63,723 bases of DNA from Vitrella brassicaformis CCMP3155 (lineage: Eukaryota; Protista; Chromerida): positions 37,631 to 101,353 of the forward strand of contig CDMY01000361.1 of the NCBI GenBank assembly GCA_001179505.1, written 5' to 3'. Position numbers and translations under genes: made by a program. This document shows positions 7,495 through 61,193 of this stretch, piece by piece. The first letter of the stretch is position 1; the number at the start of each line of letters is the position of its first letter. The notes under the pieces are model-generated. The model worked only from the letters and a program-made list of their open reading frames with translations, ran no database searches and was not told where the DNA came from.

Positions 7495-10400
7495 TTATAC
7501 GAATGAGCAGTGTAGCTTTCCCCCAATCGGAGCGTTGCACATAGGGCATTTGTTTCTGCCGTCTGCCACACGAGCAGCGCACCGCGAGCATAGTGCAAAG
7601 TGCATGCACGGCAAGAAGAGAGTATCTCGGTCGCGCTCAAAGCAGACTTGACACACCCACATGCTCGCCTGAAGGAAACAGCCATACACGCGGTCCCCAA
7701 GCATCAGCCTGTCAAGCACCCTATCTGTTGTCACCTTTTCTTGCAACTGGGCATTCTCCGCTTGAAGCACTGCAATGCGCCCTTCATCGGCACTCACCTG
7801 CACGAGACGCGCATACTCAGGATGACGTACATGAGGGCACGTTGCCTTCATTCGTCATTGACTGACTGACTGGCTGACCGACCCGCTCATTCACCTGCTG
7901 CCTGAGCGTCGAGATGTCAGCCGTCTTGTCTCTCAGCTGTTTTTCCATCCGCCCGTGTACCTCACGCATCCGACCCACACGCCGACAATGCATCTTATGT
8001 AATGCACCCAGCACCTCGGATGCATCGCCACCAGCGTCACCCCCACTCAGCGCATCGTGGTAGAAGGCGAGCGGCGAAGTGAGCACCTGGTAGTCGTCCG
8101 CGGCCTTTCGGGCGTCCCTGTCCTTCGCTCGGGCCATTTGCTGCGCCAGGTGGATCTGCCGCTTGGCCGAACCGATTTGCTCATCCAATGCGGTTGCCAA
8201 TGGAAGTAGCGAGGGCGGCAGCAGACAGGCACGGCGTGCGAGCAGCGATGTGGCAAAGCTGAGGGCCTCATTGAGCAACGCGACACTCGATGCCGAGATA
8301 AACGAACCAAGGACGTCAGAAAGAGTCGAGAAGCCCTGAACACGCGAACACGTAACCTCATATAAGTGCTGTGTATGGCAGCGTCTTGGCGCCTTTAGGT
8401 CCATCCGCATTTTACTTACGGCAAGGGTTCGTTGGTTGTGCTGGTGGATGGCACTGACCCGCTGTGCGGTGCGCGTGGGTACGCAGCTGGCGCACTTGCC
8501 GCACCTGGCACACCGACGAGCGCCACAACCATCCGCCCTAGCCCGCTTCCCACGGCCCACTGCCGGCACCGAGTAGACGCCTACATGCCATGCCATGCCA
8601 TGCCAGGGACAACCGGAGCATACATGTACTAGCCACGCTTCTTCGCGAATGTCCTTCTCGGCGTATTCTCTTTCACTCACCGCACAAGCAGACGCTATTG
8701 CCGTCTGGCCGCTCTCCGCCACCGGAATGAGAGCTTGCCAAGCCAACATCTCTCTTGCCCCCCAAAACGGCCACCTGTACGGCCGCGCACATGTCGCTCG
8801 CCATCATCCCCTCCACACAGGACGCGCACACCGACACCTCACTGTCGGCGGCAGTGTCGCCCAACAGCAGGACATCATCCGTCTCCCGGCTCAACGAGGC
8901 CTCCTTGATGTGGTGCTGTGCATATGAGTGGGCAAAGGATGATGCCAAGCAGAGAGCGGTGTGGATGCTCTTGAGCGCCAGCCACACGAGGGACAGCAGG
9001 CCGTCCACAGCCTCCGTCATCACCCACGGCAACATGTGCATGTCCGCCGCGCGAACGAGGGGCGAAAGGCTGCTGCTCAGCGCCCGCCTGACAAAGTGCC
9101 AAGAGAGAGAATGCGCGTTACGTCGACCATTCCACCCTCATTTGCCGACTGACCTGTGCGCGTTGACGACCTTTTGCTGCTCGCGCCATCTGTCCTCTCT
9201 GTCTTGCGCCTCACTACTAGCTCCCTCGATTCTCTCCAGCAGCTGCTGCCCCCGCTTCACGCACGCATCCACCGATGCGTGGGCGTACCGAAGTCGGCAC
9301 ACGGTACTCTCCAGGATAGAAAGCCTCATCCGCCAGAGGTGCGTGTGCCTCTGGAGCAGGTCCATGAGTCCACCGAGGTGTTTCTTGTGAAGCGACACGA
9401 GGGACGTGAGGCTGAACGACAAGGCACAGGAAGAAACGACATATCTTGTATATACGCTACCCCAAGGACCGAGTGGTAATCGACTGACCCGCTCGATAAT
9501 GTCCCACCTGCAACGGCCATGTCGAAGGCGAACCCCTCCGGAAGAGAAATAGCCAACATGTGCCCAACACGCCGATAGGGTGCCACAAAGCCACATGAAG
9601 ACTCGCCCAGGAACTCATGCAGCGAGGGGATCGCAGCCCGGTCACCCGGCTTGTTTCTGTCTCCGACTCCTGGTGACGAGTCCTGGGAGAAGAGGCGGTG
9701 ATGGATGTGCGACAGAGAGGCCAGCAAAGGATTGCCGCTGCGCGGTGGAGGCGGTGGGGGAGGTGGCGGGGGAGGGCGCGATGATTGCACCGTCGTGTGC
9801 TGCTTCAGGGCTTCGTTGAGGGTCGCTGTGATGTTCCTCGCTCTTTGGAGAAGCTTCTCGCTCAGCCAGTCTCGCTTCAGAACGCGCACCAACGTGACCA
9901 GGCTCTCCTGCACGCAACATGCCATATGCAGACCAGGAGGGCGTTATCATATGGGAAAGACACTCATACTATATGGCTTTTCACATTGTCGTTGCTCACG
10001 TGGTGCTTCTGAGAATTGCCCTTGACCATCAACTGCACAATGTCCCGCCAGCCATCGAGCGTCCCGACACCCATCGCACACAGCAGGCGGGCGGCGCACT
10101 CAGCACCATCAGTGTCGCCCATGGGTGCCTCGCGCCCCTCCTTGCCCTCGAACAAACGACGGCCCACTGACCCGCATAGTGCCTGGATGATGATGTCAAA
10201 TAGCGAGCTGCGAAGCATTGCCTGCACAAGTGGGAAAGAAGAGCTGCCAGGGCATGCATTGCGTGCATATATGGGACCTGTGAGAGGGTCATGACGGTCA
10301 TATGACCAGCCAGTCGTCGCTCACTCTCGATGAGCTGCTCCAGTGTCAGCAACTCTCCCTCGTCGCTGCTGATGCTCTCACCTTCCTGAGGGCTGCACGC

Positions 10401-35400: not shown

Positions 35401-38037
35401 ATGGCCACAGTTGCGCCGTCTCTGAATGGCGGACCGACTGTTCCTGCAGGTGCCTACACAGGCCTCTCTCCTCAATCCAGACTTGTTCCGCCGCACGACA
35501 GCTCACGACGACAAGTGTCGTTATTCGGCGCCACTGGCACACTCGTCGCGCATATAAGTAGGTGGTTTTTCGCACAGTCAGTGAGGGAAGAACTGCACAC
35601 ATTCTGCTTCACTGATTCGTGTCTGCCCTTTTTGATTCATAGTTGGCGGCGGCGTGTTGGCGTTCCCCTATGCGTACTCCCAGGCCGGGATCGTGCTGGG
35701 AGGCGTCCTAACAGTCGTCGCAGGCATCCTGGCTGACCTCTCCCTCCAGCTGATTGTCCTCACTGCACGAGCTACTGGACAGGTCTTCCTTCTGTGACCG
35801 TCAGCTCGTGCAGTGCTCAGGTATGATGGACGCTCTTGTGTATCTCTGCTCGTGCAGATTGAGTATTACGATATCGCCGCGAAGCTGTATGGCCCTGTCG
35901 CGCGGATCATAGTGGCTGCGCTGGTGTGCTTGGCGAGCTTCCTCAACCTGTGTCTACTCACTATACTCATTGCTGACCTGTCAGCGCCCGTGCTCGAGTA
36001 TGCCTTCGGCTCAGCCTGGACGGCACGAGGTGACTGGGGGCTGATTGAGGTGAAGGTGGTAGCCTGTGTGCTCGTCCTGCCGCTCCATCTGTGCACGTCC
36101 CTCCACGCACTGCGCTACCTGGCTATCGCAACGGCCAGCACCGCATTGATGCTTGCACTGATGGTGCTTATCAGGTAAATAAGACTGGGACGAATCCATG
36201 CGAGCTGAGCGCTTCGTGTGCGTTGTTTGCGTGCATGGCATGCAGGTCGAGTGAGTCGTTGGGCGCCCCATCGCACTCGGTAGCCATCGCTCACCAATGC
36301 GGGCTGTCTATCGTGCAGGCGCACACCGACAGGCTACTCTTTATCACAGAAAGATGGCAGGTTCGTTAACATGGGTGTCATGAAGCATTTTCGCAGAACA
36401 TGGTTGCCTGCCTTCTGTGTGCTGTCCGCAGTCTCTGTTGTCGGCATTGCCCATATTTGTGTGTGCATACATGTAAGCTGATGTATGCGCACGTTGTGGA
36501 TGCGTGCATGTGTGATGATTGTGTGTCTGTCAGGTGTCACACGAATGTGCTGCGGCTCCACGCAGAGTTCGTGAGTAAGGACAGATGAGCACGCACTCCA
36601 AAACACTGCTCCCCTATGACTCTTCNNNNNNNNNNNNNNNNNNNNNNNNNNNNNNNNNNNNNNNNNNNNNNNNNNNNNNNNNNNNNNNNNNNNNNNNNNN
36701 NNNNNNNNNNNNNNNNNNNNNNNNNNNNNNNNNNNNNNNNNNNNNNNNNNNNNNNNNNNNNNNNNNNNNNNNNNNNNNNNNNNNNNNNNNNNNNNNNNNN
36801 NNNNNNNNNNNNNNNNNNNNNNNNNNNNNNNNNNNNNNNNNNNNNNNNNNNNNNNNNNNNNNNNNNNNNNNNNNNNNNNNNNNNNNNNNNNNNNNNNNNN
36901 NNNNNNNNNNNNNNNNNNNNNNNNNCCCCCCCCTTCCCGTTGCTGCAGTGCCGACGCGCAACAGGGTGAAACGCGTCATTCACTCGAGCCTCTCCATCGT
37001 CATGGTGATCTACCTCATCGTGGGCTCCTTTGGCTATCTGTATGCCATCGAACGCACATGCGGCAATGTGTTGCTCAACTTTCGAAGGTAGGCCAGCCCT
37101 GCCGCACGGCGACAGAACAACGCTCTGATATGTTCCCGCAGGGATGACAGTCTAGCGATAATGTTGCGGGTCTGTCTGGCCTTCATCTCTCTAGGGTGTA
37201 TGCCATTGCAGCTGATGCCGGGAAGGCGAGCCCTCTTCTATGTCATACACCACCTACCGTCATCCCTAGCGTGCTGGTGCCCCTCCATTCTCTCACCCCG
37301 CGCTCTGGCCACCTTTAGCCAACAAAACGACTCAGCGCATCACCACAACCAGCAGACCGACACCCTTTCGAGCACCGGCAGCCCGCCTGAGCTCTTGAGA
37401 CAGCCGATGATTGCAGGGAAGGGCAGAAGCAGCGACGGGGAAGACGGCGCGATGACGGTTGACATTATGGAGCAGACAGATCTGCAACAAGAGGGGTCGC
37501 CAGAGCCTGATGGAGAGTCGCCGGACAGAGAAGCCCGGCGATTGTCGCTGGAGCGGGGTGGGACGATTGACGTGTTAGATAAGGTTGGTTGGGTACATTA
37601 CGTCATTGGCACAGTTTTGTACGCGGGGACGGCGACTCTTGTGTCCATCTACGTGAGATCTCTCAGCTCGATCTTAACGCTAGGAGGTGAGGGGGAGCGG
37701 TGCCTGAAAGTCAACCACCACACGAGCTGCCCATTGATTGTGACGGGTCTGTGTAGGTTCTACAGTGGCCATGACGATCGCGTTCGTTCTTCCCAGTGGC
37801 CTATACTTGAGGGCCAATTGGGCCCGGCAGGGAGGACGGGCCTTCAAGATATGTTCGATCCTCTTCCTCGTGTTCGCTGTGCCTTTGGGCCTGCTTGGTA
37901 CTATCGAGGCCATTTACAAGCTGAGTAGTCCGCGCTGCCCCGTTCCGTCGCCTCTGCTGCAGCGGCACCTTACGCACATGGTGCACAGGCAGTGCAGAGA
38001 CACGGTACTTATACCGTCGGTCCTCAGGCACTTCTGA
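35401..38037 (+). CDS. Amino-acid transporter, Aa_trans/SLC38 (AAAP) family; spans an assembly gap
   Basis: VGGGVLAFPYAYSQAGIVLG, YYDIAAKLYGP, multiple TM helices, IYLIVGSFGYL....CGNVLLNF, GSTVAMTIAFVLPSGLYL. Confidence 0.85.
36626..36925. other. Assembly gap (300 N) inside the transporter gene
   Basis: Run of N. Confidence 1.
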
Positions 38038-38195
38038 CAGATAGGTGGAGAATGGGAAGCCTTTTTTCCATCGACTTTTTGACGGTGTATATTGGGTGTG
38101 TGGCCGCGTGTGCGAAAAAAAAGACGTCGAAAAAAGAAGAAAAAGGACAAAAGGCTTAGGGGCGTCCTTTAAACACTAGCCTGTATGTGTAGTGG

Positions 38196-38310
38196 AGAGA
38201 CGATGTGGTGGAGAGACGACACAAGAGCAGAGAGGGCTGCAACGATGTGAAGGAATGCAGTGGAGAGACGCCAGATCACTATGGAGAGGGCGGGAGAAGT
38301 CGGAGAGACG
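38196..38310 (+). promoter_or_regulatory. Cluster of four GGAGAGACG (contains WGAGACG) motifs
   Basis: AGAGACG at 38196, 38212, 38264 and 38304. A regulatory role is inferred from similarity to the Toxoplasma WGAGACG promoter element. Confidence 0.4.
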
Positions 38311-38470
38311 ACTTCGTAGTGCCCTTTCTCACCGTTGCTTTCTGCCTCCGCCTGCAATAGCTGTTTCAAAGCAACCTTTTTTGTGCGCTTTGTGGGGCAG
38401 ATGTGTGGCAGTGTCTTTCTGCGTGCGTTTTTCGCCGTTTCTTTTGCCCTTCTTGCGCCAAGCGTGCTCT

Positions 38471-38691
38471 ATGAGTTGCCCTCCTCCGTCGGGGGGTCGG
38501 GACTCGCTCCGCGTTCCGGCGGCCGCGTCGCGAAATGCATGCAAAGCCCCCAAGCTCGCATGCAAGCCCCCATCAAGAAAGACGGTACCGAATGAAAGAG
38601 TCTCGATGGCCCCAATTACGAACGAACGAACGAACACGAACTTCGGGTAAGAGCGTGCCTCGCTCGCTAAAAGCTCGCGAGTCCCGAATGG
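38471..38691 (+). repeat. Dispersed ~200-bp structured non-coding element, copy A
   Basis: Shares blocks with 58724-58918, including 41 identical nt (38531-38571). Perfect 11-bp inverted repeat at 38497-38507 / 38677-38687. Confidence 0.85.
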
Positions 38692-39003
38692 GTTTCTTTC
38701 GCTGGTGTGTGGCCTCCTGCGTGCCTTCTGCAGTGTCCCTTTGGTTCCCTCTCTGTTTGTCTTGGTGTGTTCCCCGCTTCTGGTGCTGTTTTCACCGTTT
38801 TTTTCGCTCGTCCTGGACGCCCCTGAGGTACCCTGAGGTGTGGGGGTCTGCTGTGTGCTGCTGGTGTGCTGAGAACCGTGTCGGCAATGGATGCAATTTT
38901 TTCCACGGGTTTTTTGCAAAAGCTCGCCAAGGCTCGACAGACTCTTTGAGCACAATAACCAACCAATCAACCAGCCGCCTCACTGCGGCTCGTAACACCC
39001 ATC

Positions 39004-40233
39004 ATGCTTCACCGTCTGCCTGCGGAGCTACTGAGGAATTTTGTTTTGTTTGTCGGTTCGTCGTCGTGTGATCTTGCTGCCCTGAGAGCCACGTCACAAG
39101 GATGCTGCTCAGGCATCACTGCAGAGCTCATTGTGCTGATCATCGATACGTCCCTCGCCCGCCACTCGCTCGACGACCTCGTCAGCATCGACCGCACAGC
39201 CCCTCTGTCATTCGACTACTTGTTTCGCGTGGCCTATGTGCTGGAGCAGGGCAGTGACGAGTGGCATGTGATGGGTGTGTTTGTGCGTCTGGCAGCCATC
39301 TATCGGCTGATCCCTCAGGCGCTGTCTCAGCAAGGGCCGCGCATTATGCTGTCAGCTGACTGTATTTCCACTCATGTGCCCACCCGGGCTGCTTTCCACC
39401 GGCTGCCCCTCACGATGACCATTTTCAAGATGATTCAGGGCTGTCTCATCTACAAGGGCAGGAGCCTCACACTCGTGCAGGAAGAGCAAGATGGTGGTGC
39501 AGCCGGTCGGGGAGTTGGGGACATTGAATTTTGTGTGGTCACCCTGGTCGAACTCCCGCGCCTTCACAGTTACCGCAGGTATGCGAGACATCACACGCTG
39601 AATACAAGAAAAAAGTCGGGAAACACACAGCGCGGTGTATGTGTGTACAGTTGCTATAAGAATAGCGACCCGGTCGTACGCGAGAACGACTCGCTCTACC
39701 CCAGCTTCTCCGCCTTCCTGCTGCACAGCGTCATGTACCGGTGGTGTGCCGAGGAGGTGGTGGGCGAGAAGCGCACCCTCTTCGGCACCATCCACCCGCG
39801 ATTTCTCTCCAGATACCGGGCCATCATCACAGACCCGATTGAGAAAGAGCAGCATGGGGCCTTCATCATGGTCGATGGACAGCATGATGGGGGAGATGTC
39901 AACGCGGACCCGACGTCAGTGGTTGAGTTCAGGCTGGTGTTGATGACCGGCTTCCGACAAGATGATTCCTTCGCTTCATACATGACCCTGGGACAGGGGT
40001 TTGTTGAGGTGCGGTTGGATCAGCATGCTTGCTGAGGATGTAAGTCATGGCTGTGATGGTGTCGTGTTGTTGTGTTTTGTCAGGTGTACACTACAGAAGG
40101 CGCTGCGAGAGGTGTGACGAGCGGCAGCAACTTGGATGTCCGCCTTCCCGTGACGATGCCCAAGATGCGGAGCGTGTTGGGACGTTATGGCCTGCCGGCC
40201 CCTTCAGCTCTGTTCCGCACTGGGCATACCTGA
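39004..40233 (+). CDS. Lineage-specific hypothetical protein with F-box-like N-terminus (3 exons)
   Basis: MLHRLPAELLRNFVLFV start. Introns 39579-39650 and 40009-40083 are canonical GT-AG. Ends ...RYGLPAPSALFRTGHT TGA at 40231-40233. Confidence 0.75.
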
Positions 40234-56898: not shown

Positions 56899-58570
56899 AT
56901 GTATCACCATTCGAGCAGTTCGCGTCCCTCTCTCATGTTGAATGCCTCTCCTGATGATCCGCTCGTGGGGCGCCTGGTGTGGAAGCGCAGGCAAATGGCT
57001 CCCGGACAGCCGGACGAAATCATCTGCGGTCAGCACCTCACCGCATTCATCGAGATCCAGCATATCTGCCGACACTGTGTGTGTGTCCTCAGGTTTGGTT
57101 GTCGGTCGTGTGGCTCAGCAGCGGTGGATGACTACCAACCTGTCGACTGCCTCAGCGTATTCCATCCTCTTTGACGACGGGCGGCTGGAACTCCTCGGGC
57201 GGGAGGCCCTCTGCCGCCAACTGCGTCAACAGCTCACAGATACGGCACAGAAGCCGCCACCAGCCAGTCGCTCCACCCTCCCACCGTCACTCGCGCCCGA
57301 CCAAGACGCCGTGCACCACGTCATGGCGGGCGCTGGGGGGACCACCACCACCCCTGCTGCTCCCTCTTCCTCCCCTGCACCACCACCGACAGTCGACATG
57401 CGCCAGGGCACTCCCGATGGACGCCTCACCATGGCGGCACTTCTGGCTTCCATGAGCGCCCCTCAGCAGCTCGCCCAGCAGTCGCCATCGTCCCTCATCA
57501 GACAGATAACAATGCTGCAACACGTGACTAATACGCAACAACAACAACTAATGCAACAGCAACAGCAGCAGCAGCAGCAGCTGCTGCCAGCAGCGGAGGA
57601 TTCAAAGGACGACTCGAAGCCGCAAGAGACAGAAAGTGAGGAGAGTAATCCGAGATGGGAGGTTGCTATAAGTTGTTTGTTGTATGTTATGTGCAGGGTT
57701 TGGTGAGGTGGTTTGGTACCGGTTCAGAGGTCGCATGCTGCCAGGACTCGTTGTTGACCCGGACGACAAAAGTAAGACAAGACAGCGCACACACACACAC
57801 ACACACAGAGATAAGATTGGCACCATGTGGGTGCGGTCTGCGTTGCTGAGCAGATCCGCGCGTCAGGTTCGGCCCCGACGTCTTAGTACTGAGAAGACCC
57901 GACGCACACCTGAGTAGGTCAAGTACCTGCCTGTCAGACACGCCCGTCACTGTCTGTCTGTGCATTCTTGCTTCTCTCGCTCGTGTGTGCAGTCTTGTCG
58001 TTGGACGACAACCAGTACGTGTGGACAACGGTGGGCGGCAACAGGGTCATGGATTGGAAGTCAGACAAGAACTTCGAACTCTTTGGGCCGCGCATGGCCA
58101 AGTCGCAGGCCGGCACCAAGGCCGTCCAGGTCGCTATCCAGCTGTCGGGCTGGAAACCATCAGAGGAGCTTCTCACAAGAGCGTGAGCACATACAGAGCA
58201 CTGCATCCCGATTTCTACATCTATCGTCGTTATCCACCCGTGCAGCGGTTTCCACGACCTGGATCTTGAGAGTGAGGAAGATGAGCTGAGCAGCGAGGCT
58301 CCTCCGCCTCCCAAAAGGCGCGGCCGTCCCCCCAAGCGTGGCCGTGGCGGGTACCACGTTGGAGGGAAGCGTGGCCGGCGAGCGGTGCGAGTAGTGGAGG
58401 AGCACCCTGAGGAAGAAGAAGAAGACGATGACGACGAGGACGAGGACGAGGTGGAGGCGGCGGGCGGACAGCCAGTGGGTCAAGGCGACAGTGGCAACGA
58501 GGGTGAGGGCAGCGAAGGGGATGATGAGGATGACTCAGATGATGGGGCAGATGCGGCGCCGACTGACTGA
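56899..58570 (+). CDS. Putative chromatin reader: Tudor-like + poly-Gln + PWWP-like + AT-hook + acidic tail
   Basis: DPLVGRLVWKR...C G|LVVGRV...YSILFDDGRLELL; poly-Q; FGEVVWYRFRGRMLPGLVVDPDD; last exon PKRRGRPPKRGRGG and E/D tract. TGA at 58568-58570. Confidence 0.65.
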
Positions 58571-58723
58571 TCGCTGATTGGACTGACCCGATAGATAGAT
58601 CTGCGATTGGCCAGTGTGTGGAGGTGGTTGCGGGGTGTGACGATGCATGGTGCGTGTGGTGACGGTGCATGGCACAATGGAGGCCCCCAGAGGCCCCCAC
58701 CGGGAAAGTCCTGCTTCGCGCAC

Positions 58724-58918
58724 ATGAAGTTTCCCTCCTCCGTCGGGCTGGCGGGACTCGCTACGCTTTCGCCGCTCCCCGAAATGCATGCAAAGCCCCC
58801 AAGCTCGCATGCAAGCCCCCGCAAGGAACCGAAGGAAGTGCTAGCTTGGCCCCAATTGCGGACACTTTGTTTCGTAAGAGCGTGCCACGCTCAGCAAGCT
58901 TCGCGGGTCCCGAACTGG
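58724..58918 (+). repeat. Dispersed ~200-bp structured non-coding element, copy B, immediately upstream of LDH
   Basis: The 41 nt at 58780-58820 are identical to 38531-38571. Inverted repeat 58752-58761 / 58903-58912 with one U-G wobble. Confidence 0.85.

Positions 58919-58965: not shown

Positions 58966-61193
<2,228 letters not shown>

Follow-up and report, generated by a model that had tools for sequence, protein, structure and literature searches.

The window considered here is a stretch of 63,723 nucleotides from a contig of the chromerid Vitrella brassicaformis. Two similar stretches of roughly 200 bp lie on its plus strand in the same orientation. The first (copy A) precedes an open reading frame (ORF) without recognised relatives, which starts at 39004. 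The second (copy B) ends 52 bp before the start codon, at 58966, of a gene of the lactate/malate dehydrogenase (LDH) family. This gene is spliced, and its exons were searched singly; the exon near 59654–59780 matches Ldh_1_N with an E value of 7e-11. Upstream of copy B, a coding-like segment (58196–58567, plus strand) with a long, acidic run rich in E and D stops about 150 bp short of it, so that copy B occupies a spacer of only ~400 bp between two same-strand genes. Elsewhere in the window, an assembly gap (a run of N) at ~36625–36920 falls inside the ORF listed at 36585–37091.

A preliminary description of the window had noted these two stretches as a set of conserved blocks separated by variable spacers, and had offered three readings: a promoter and leader cassette shared by the two downstream genes, a structured RNA, or a non-autonomous transposable element. 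Its observations hold up. When both regions are read and then aligned pairwise, the two stretches are found where they had been placed, with the block pattern as described, including a 41-nt core that is identical in both. The core is a tandem repeat of two ~21-nt units, each with a GCATGC palindrome and a run of five C residues; some copies elsewhere in the genome have three units. The second and the last block are complementary over 11 bp in copy A, and one A>G change in copy B leaves a single T·G pair. The expanded spacer of copy A is an (ACGA)n microsatellite, the length of which varies across the family. Alignment of the family trimmed the limits of the two copies slightly, to those given in Table 1; one boundary base of copy A (38471 or 38688) is a T/A of the host. 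A search with a model of the family finds only these two members within the window.

Table 1. Coordinates of the two copies, their internal features and the interrupted host repeat in the window
Feature	Position	Strand	Basis or remark
Copy A, full-length, subfamily A	38471..38688	- (element's own 5'->3')	genome searches, family alignment
5' asymmetric inverted repeat, copy A, 1 nt from 5' end	38677..38687	-	overlaps 8-bp palindrome
5' hairpin, 5-bp stem, 5-nt loop	38651..38665	-	pairing in copies
Internal microsatellite, (ACGA)n on plus strand	38618..38641	-	alignment; variable length
Central tandem repeat, copy A, 41-nt core	38531..38571	-	two ~21-nt units
3' asymmetric inverted repeat, copy A, 26 nt from 3' end	38497..38507	-	pairing analysis
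3' terminal segment, weak GC-rich imperfect palindrome	38471..38496	-	folding
Copy B, full-length, subfamily B	58724..58914	-	genome searches, family alignment
5' inverted repeat, copy B, carries private A>G	58903..58912	-	family alignment
Central tandem-repeat core, copy B	58780..58820	-	pairwise alignment
3' inverted repeat, copy B	58752..58761	-	family alignment
Repeat Y, left half, split by copy A (context, not element)	38182..38470	-	flank comparison, paralogues
Repeat Y, right half	38689..38901	-	flank comparison, paralogues

The immediate surroundings of both copies contain further repetitive DNA. Repeat Y, which is interrupted by copy A, is a dispersed sequence of ~525 bp that is unrelated to the element; at least 20 further copies are present in the genome, and several of these span the site of copy A without interruption. 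The reverse arrangement occurs on contig C231, where a copy of the element harbours a composite of Y and a ~325-bp unit with a 3-bp TCA duplication at its borders. Each family is thus found nested within the other, depending on the locus. Close to copy B, at 58679–58700 on its upstream side, lies a tandem pair of AGGCCCCC motifs; the pair resembles the variant core of some subfamily A copies, is left unscored by the family model, and may have remained from an older element fragment.

The preliminary description had proposed a genome-wide search with the core. In the V. brassicaformis assembly (72,700,666 bases in 1064 contigs), BLAST-type searches return 49 matches with copy A and 54 with copy B. 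Searches with terminal motifs give 50 and 29 matches, and none in reversed-pattern controls. With a covariance model that uses sequence only and was trained on 23 full-length copies, at least 87 matches are found at ~70 dispersed loci across the whole assembly; 28 of these are full length, 35 consist of the 3' end only, 16 of the 5' end only, and eight are internal pieces. The copies fall into two subfamilies, A and B, with consensus sequences that are 79% identical and most alike at the ends, in the hairpin and in the central repeat. The blocks that had been taken as a sign of selection on the window copies reflect this difference between the two consensus sequences.

Copies A and B are independent insertions. 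Copy A is 97.2–99.1% identical to copies on C282, C470 and C770, and the four youngest copies of subfamily A share 97.2–99.5% pairwise identity; one of the two subfamilies has thus been active recently, and copy A is young. Copy B is older, with 94% identity to the consensus of subfamily B. The exact 26-nt pattern of the core has no match in the metagenome collection searched, and no description of this element family was found in the literature. In the published repeat table for Vitrella, Helitrons account for ~18 kb, next to a large unclassified fraction (PMC4501334, supplement).

The limits of the element are sharp. In 26 of 26 copies aligned with their flanks, similarity halts abruptly at the same two positions. 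These copies have neither inverted repeats at both tips nor a poly-A or simple-repeat tail; no duplication is visible beside them, and their wider flanks show no further target preference. All-against-all comparison of flanks yielded two paralogous empty sites, and a nested copy provides a third informative site. At copy A (locus L001), the filled site reads A-element-A, and the paralogue of Y in locus L025 has a single A. The second case is a copy of subfamily B on C430 (L026), which is absent from a paralogue on C254 (L046) and follows the same single-base rule. In the third, on C629, one copy of the element has a full second copy inserted into it, and the sequence of the host copy resumes exactly and without duplication. 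None of these three filled/empty or nested sites has a target duplication of more than 1 bp. Each insertion adds the element and one T/A beside a single T/A of the host; in sequence terms, a 1-bp duplication and a T carried by the element look the same. In the element's own direction there is a T at both boundaries, and the base after the T of the empty site is A, T and A, respectively, at the three sites. The young copy on C470, also considered for an empty site, has flanks that are unique in the genome.

Between these ends, the element is ~190–220 bp long and non-coding. Its own 5'->3' direction corresponds to the minus strand of the window. In this direction it consists of a T, an inverted repeat of 10–11 bp, a hairpin, the microsatellite, a conserved 10-mer, the 21-nt tandem repeat, the partner of the inverted repeat, and a GC-rich tail that ends in ...CA-T. 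The inverted repeats are asymmetric, that is, placed at different distances from the two ends. Across the 23 copies, 10 of 11 positions of the 5' repeat are near-invariant, and the two repeats are paired in 94% of cells. All 23 copies have the hairpin, 9–11 nt inward of the 5' repeat; its stem measures 5–6 bp (6 in subfamily B), and 91% of its cells are paired. Some bases of the 5' repeat can, in subfamily A, also pair with bases downstream. The microsatellite is (ACGA/ACAA)n on the plus strand across the family, which corresponds to (TTCG/TTTG)n in the element direction. The palindrome in the 3' segment has a stem of 6 bp with one G·T pair in subfamily A and only 3–4 bp in subfamily B, and local folding of this segment gives z-scores of +0.55 and -0.54.

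Two other kinds of short mobile sequence can be set aside. A miniature inverted-repeat element (MITE) was rejected, as one repeat arm lies 26 nt inside the end and no duplication exceeds 1 bp. An introner was considered, since one copy begins with GTGAGT, but the ends form no splice sites.

The anatomy and insertion behaviour point to rolling-circle transposons. We consider the unit to be probably a non-autonomous DNA transposon of Helitron-like group 2, that is, a Helitron2 or a Helentron-associated element of the HINE type, similar to DINE-1 of Drosophila; the assignment is made from sequence. HLE2 is the current name for this group (PMC11417382). Of the three readings offered at the outset, this is the one that the genome-wide data favour, through the ~70 loci, sharp ends, empty sites, end anatomy, microsatellite and nesting. 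The likeness of copies A and B would then reflect transposition rather than a common regulatory leader.

Helitron2 elements have asymmetric inverted repeats of 8–15 bp, 0–2 bp from the 5' end and 20–30 bp from the 3' end; they also have a T and a hairpin at the 5' side, as a rule do not duplicate the target, and are represented by more 3' than 5' ends (PMC3627910). HINE and DINE-1 elements have subterminal inverted repeats, palindromes, a microsatellite, central repeats and T targets, and insert without target modification (PMC4067079). For group 2 as a whole, the 5' repeat is expected 0–4 nt and the 3' repeat ~20–60 nt from the respective ends, and the repeats of the Vitrella element fall within both ranges. 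The 5' hairpin typical of the group is present in 23 of 23 copies, and both of its optional internal features, microsatellite and central tandem repeats, are found.

Comparison with individual systems reveals differences as well as likenesses. With Helitron-1N1_CRe, a non-autonomous Helitron2 of Chlamydomonas (PMC3627910), the element shares asymmetric repeats and a 5' hairpin that touches or lies near the 5' repeat, and with Helitron2 in general the 5' T, insertion after a T with no duplication of more than 1 bp, and the reported excess of 3' ends (PMC3627910). However, it measures ~200 bp and the Chlamydomonas elements ~660 bp; its 3' hairpin is weak, especially in subfamily B; and a single T seems to be needed rather than a run of T. 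For group 2 a T-T dinucleotide is usually quoted, whereas here the host contributes only one T. Similarities to HINE and DINE-1 elements (PMC4067079) include a palindrome inside the 5' subterminal repeat, a short inverted repeat a few nucleotides downstream, tandem repeats in the centre along with a microsatellite, T-flanked insertions that seem to leave the target unmodified, and the formation of arrays. The published 3' repeat of HINEs lies 38–60 bp from the end, in contrast to 26–37 bp in the Vitrella element, which has no sequence similarity to any described family. Canonical Helitrons (HLE1) leave no duplication, in line with the limit of 1 bp seen here; they also lack inverted repeats at the tips, have hairpin-bearing ends and a host T on the 3' side, and occur in tandem or multi-terminus arrangements; but their ends are 5'-TC and CTRR-3', they insert between A and T, and they have no paired repeats, while the Vitrella element ends in ...TCA(T) and does have paired repeats. 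The best reading is an ordinary small transposon of a known kind that is new as a family.

Genes for RepHel proteins, which combine a Rep (HUH) nuclease and a Pif1 helicase, are present in the genome. There are 14 matches to Helitron_like_N. One uninterrupted frame of 801 amino acids contains a full Helitron_like_N Rep domain with an E value of 3.8e-52 (L061:1102–3504, corresponding to C366:90545–92947, plus strand), and Rep adjoins PIF1 on C326 and C200. Related, more broken Rep and Pif1 loci occur on C200, C326, C227, C571, C219, C347 and C239. HINEs are tied to Helentrons with an AP-endonuclease domain; in contrast, the RepHel stretches read in Vitrella have Rep and Pif1 and no endonuclease. 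A RepHel element with the same ends as the small element was not found. Terminus matches do not occur close to any of the 14 Rep matches; fuzzy searches for termini at 17 Rep loci and, with up to 2–6 mismatches, around the 14 Rep matches, in which several RepHel loci were covered short of their 3' sides, gave nothing convincing; and comparison among the Rep loci revealed no element boundaries. The proposed membership of HLE2 thus rests on end anatomy and insertion behaviour.

By analogy with the known family, a RepHel protein encoded elsewhere in the genome would nick the element at its 5' T, unwind one strand, and stop at the terminus, as signalled by both inverted repeats and the 3' structure. 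The freed single strand would then be joined next to a T in the target. In this way, copy A would have entered repeat Y upstream of the orphan ORF, and copy B the narrow gap that precedes the LDH-family gene. The conserved blocks of the two copies would correspond to the sequences without which a master copy could not transpose.

Insertions of the element into itself show a strong regularity. All inserts into resident copies share one site, at positions equivalent to 38648–38650 of copy A and directly beside the 5' hairpin, and one orientation, always head-to-tail. Nine junction events were found at eight loci. Junctions from host to insert are seen on C629, C249, C254, C359 (two, which could be copies of each other) and C788, and 'tail' junctions from insert to host on C374, C629, C642 and C822, the last with three stacked tails. 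The C822 nest (L021; C822:7551–10684) contains at least six element pieces, including these tails, along with an assembly gap and AT-rich low-complexity DNA; reverse-transcriptase (RT) matches lie 5.5 kb away on the same contig. Serial nesting at the hotspot produces head-to-tail arrays, stacked short tails and apparent truncations that cluster at model positions 164–175. A target choice that is confined to one strand and adjacent to a structure would fit a single-strand HUH nuclease, and the hairpin-adjacent, one-orientation hotspot may be a natural read-out of how the nuclease of a group-2 Helitron chooses its target. Such recurrent insertion at the same site and in the same orientation amounts to a natural dataset on target choice in a poorly understood group of transposons.

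The prevalence of incomplete copies could suggest a different mobile element, namely a tail-less retroposon similar to a SINE. Its minus-strand RNA would be copied into DNA at nicked T sites by the reverse transcriptase of a LINE, an enzyme specific for the 3' end, and many of the resulting copies would be truncated at their 5' side. There are indeed more pieces with the 3' end alone than with the 5' end alone (35 versus 16), the genome holds at least 82 RT matches, and the asymmetric ends of DINE-1-type elements once led to their misclassification as non-LTR elements (PMC4067079). We nonetheless regard this as an unlikely origin. The 35:16 excess is partly a detection effect that stems from the host pieces of nested insertions, the ~36-nt tails of which are hard to find; and many truncation points coincide at the nested-insertion hotspot, model positions 164–175, instead of being random. 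The three sites described above lack a duplication of more than 1 bp, the 3' end has no A-rich or simple-repeat tail, and inverted repeats 1 nt and 26 nt from the ends would have no role in retroposition. Searches with Rfam and ARAGORN detect no tRNA, 5S or 7SL head, and in subfamily A a run of four T residues 17 nt from the would-be 5' end of the RNA would be a terminator for RNA polymerase III. When the 82 RT matches were compared with the copies, no 3'-end-only copy was found just downstream of an RT domain; two full-length copies of subfamily B lie 2.2–2.6 kb downstream of RT domains, and one of these has its own empty site. SINEs that are moved by stringent-type LINEs resemble the Vitrella element in being small and non-coding, with asymmetric ends and many copies that lack the 5' part, but the Pol III head, the tail repeat, the duplications and the LINE with a shared 3' end are absent here.

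A further reading is that of a structured RNA: the unit would either encode, in many copies, a non-coding RNA that a long-range helix closes, or act as a cis-regulatory RNA. The 11-bp closing helix is indeed predicted in every fold. The fold energies are ordinary, however: copies A and B, folded as RNA and as DNA, give z-scores of -0.38 to -0.82, and 44–74 of 200 shuffled sequences fold as well. Among the 23 pairs examined for covariation in the 23 copies, there is no case in which both partners have changed, and the covariation score is the same as the mean after shuffling. Rfam yields no match at gathering thresholds, nor any at E<=10 save one chance match, and ARAGORN is negative. The A>G change of copy B, which had been read as pairing-compatible and thus selected, is a singleton among the 23 copies and an ordinary mutation in an older copy. 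As most copies are, in addition, truncated or interrupted, the existence of such an RNA gene is scarcely credible.

The remaining reading was that of a portable promoter and 5' leader under selection, which would define a set of co-regulated genes and use the double GCATGC core as a site for an AP2-type transcription factor. Both window copies are upstream of plus-strand ORFs in the same orientation, and the core is the best-conserved internal block between the subfamilies. In addition, TGCATGCA occurs eight times in the window, where 2.9 occurrences are expected, and only one of 100 shuffled sequences reaches eight. Helitrons are also known to spread transcription-factor sites (PMC6927752). 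On the other side, the family behaves as a transposon, with empty sites, nesting, truncation and arrays. Its copies are truncated and stacked in each other and in other repeats; copy A itself sits inside repeat Y, and many element loci have other repeats in common within 1.5 kb. Four ATG triplets on the plus strand of the element would be upstream start codons if it served as a leader. Nor does the orientation towards genes that this reading would imply emerge: the nearest downstream coding segment at 44 loci is on the same strand in 16 cases, on the opposite strand in 10, and missing within 1.5 kb in 18, a survey that indicates only the absence of a strong bias because it relied on a crude, insensitive codon-bias detector (trained on 43 long ORFs, and finding only one LDH exon at a threshold of 15). 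Taken as a regulon-defining cassette, the unit is thus highly improbable. Since the common 'leader' is transposon sequence, the two downstream genes need not be co-regulated.

A more restricted regulatory role concerns the core and individual copies. In its 15-nt form, the core is present at 37 places in the genome, of which only about three lie outside copies of the element. The composite core is thus nearly confined to the element and is not a general promoter motif. It is conceivable, but on balance unlikely, that the double GCATGC/C5 core is a putative AP2-type binding module that transposition has scattered to ~70 loci, with some insertions, such as copy B, driving or tuning their neighbours. 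If so, a transposon would have built regulatory wiring in the free-living organisms most closely related to the apicomplexan parasites. Single copies, above all copy B in the case of the LDH-family gene, may contribute to a putative promoter of the neighbouring gene.

Recognition of the unit as a probable transposon removes the false lead of a common regulatory leader, and provides a curated, end-defined family of small elements of the rolling-circle type for Vitrella. This should be useful for masking, for the curation of gene models near 5' ends, and in work on transposon-borne regulatory motifs in chromerids. Six TGCATGCA octamers in the window lie outside the element, at positions 7601, 14629, 17358, 50871, 51492 and 59846.
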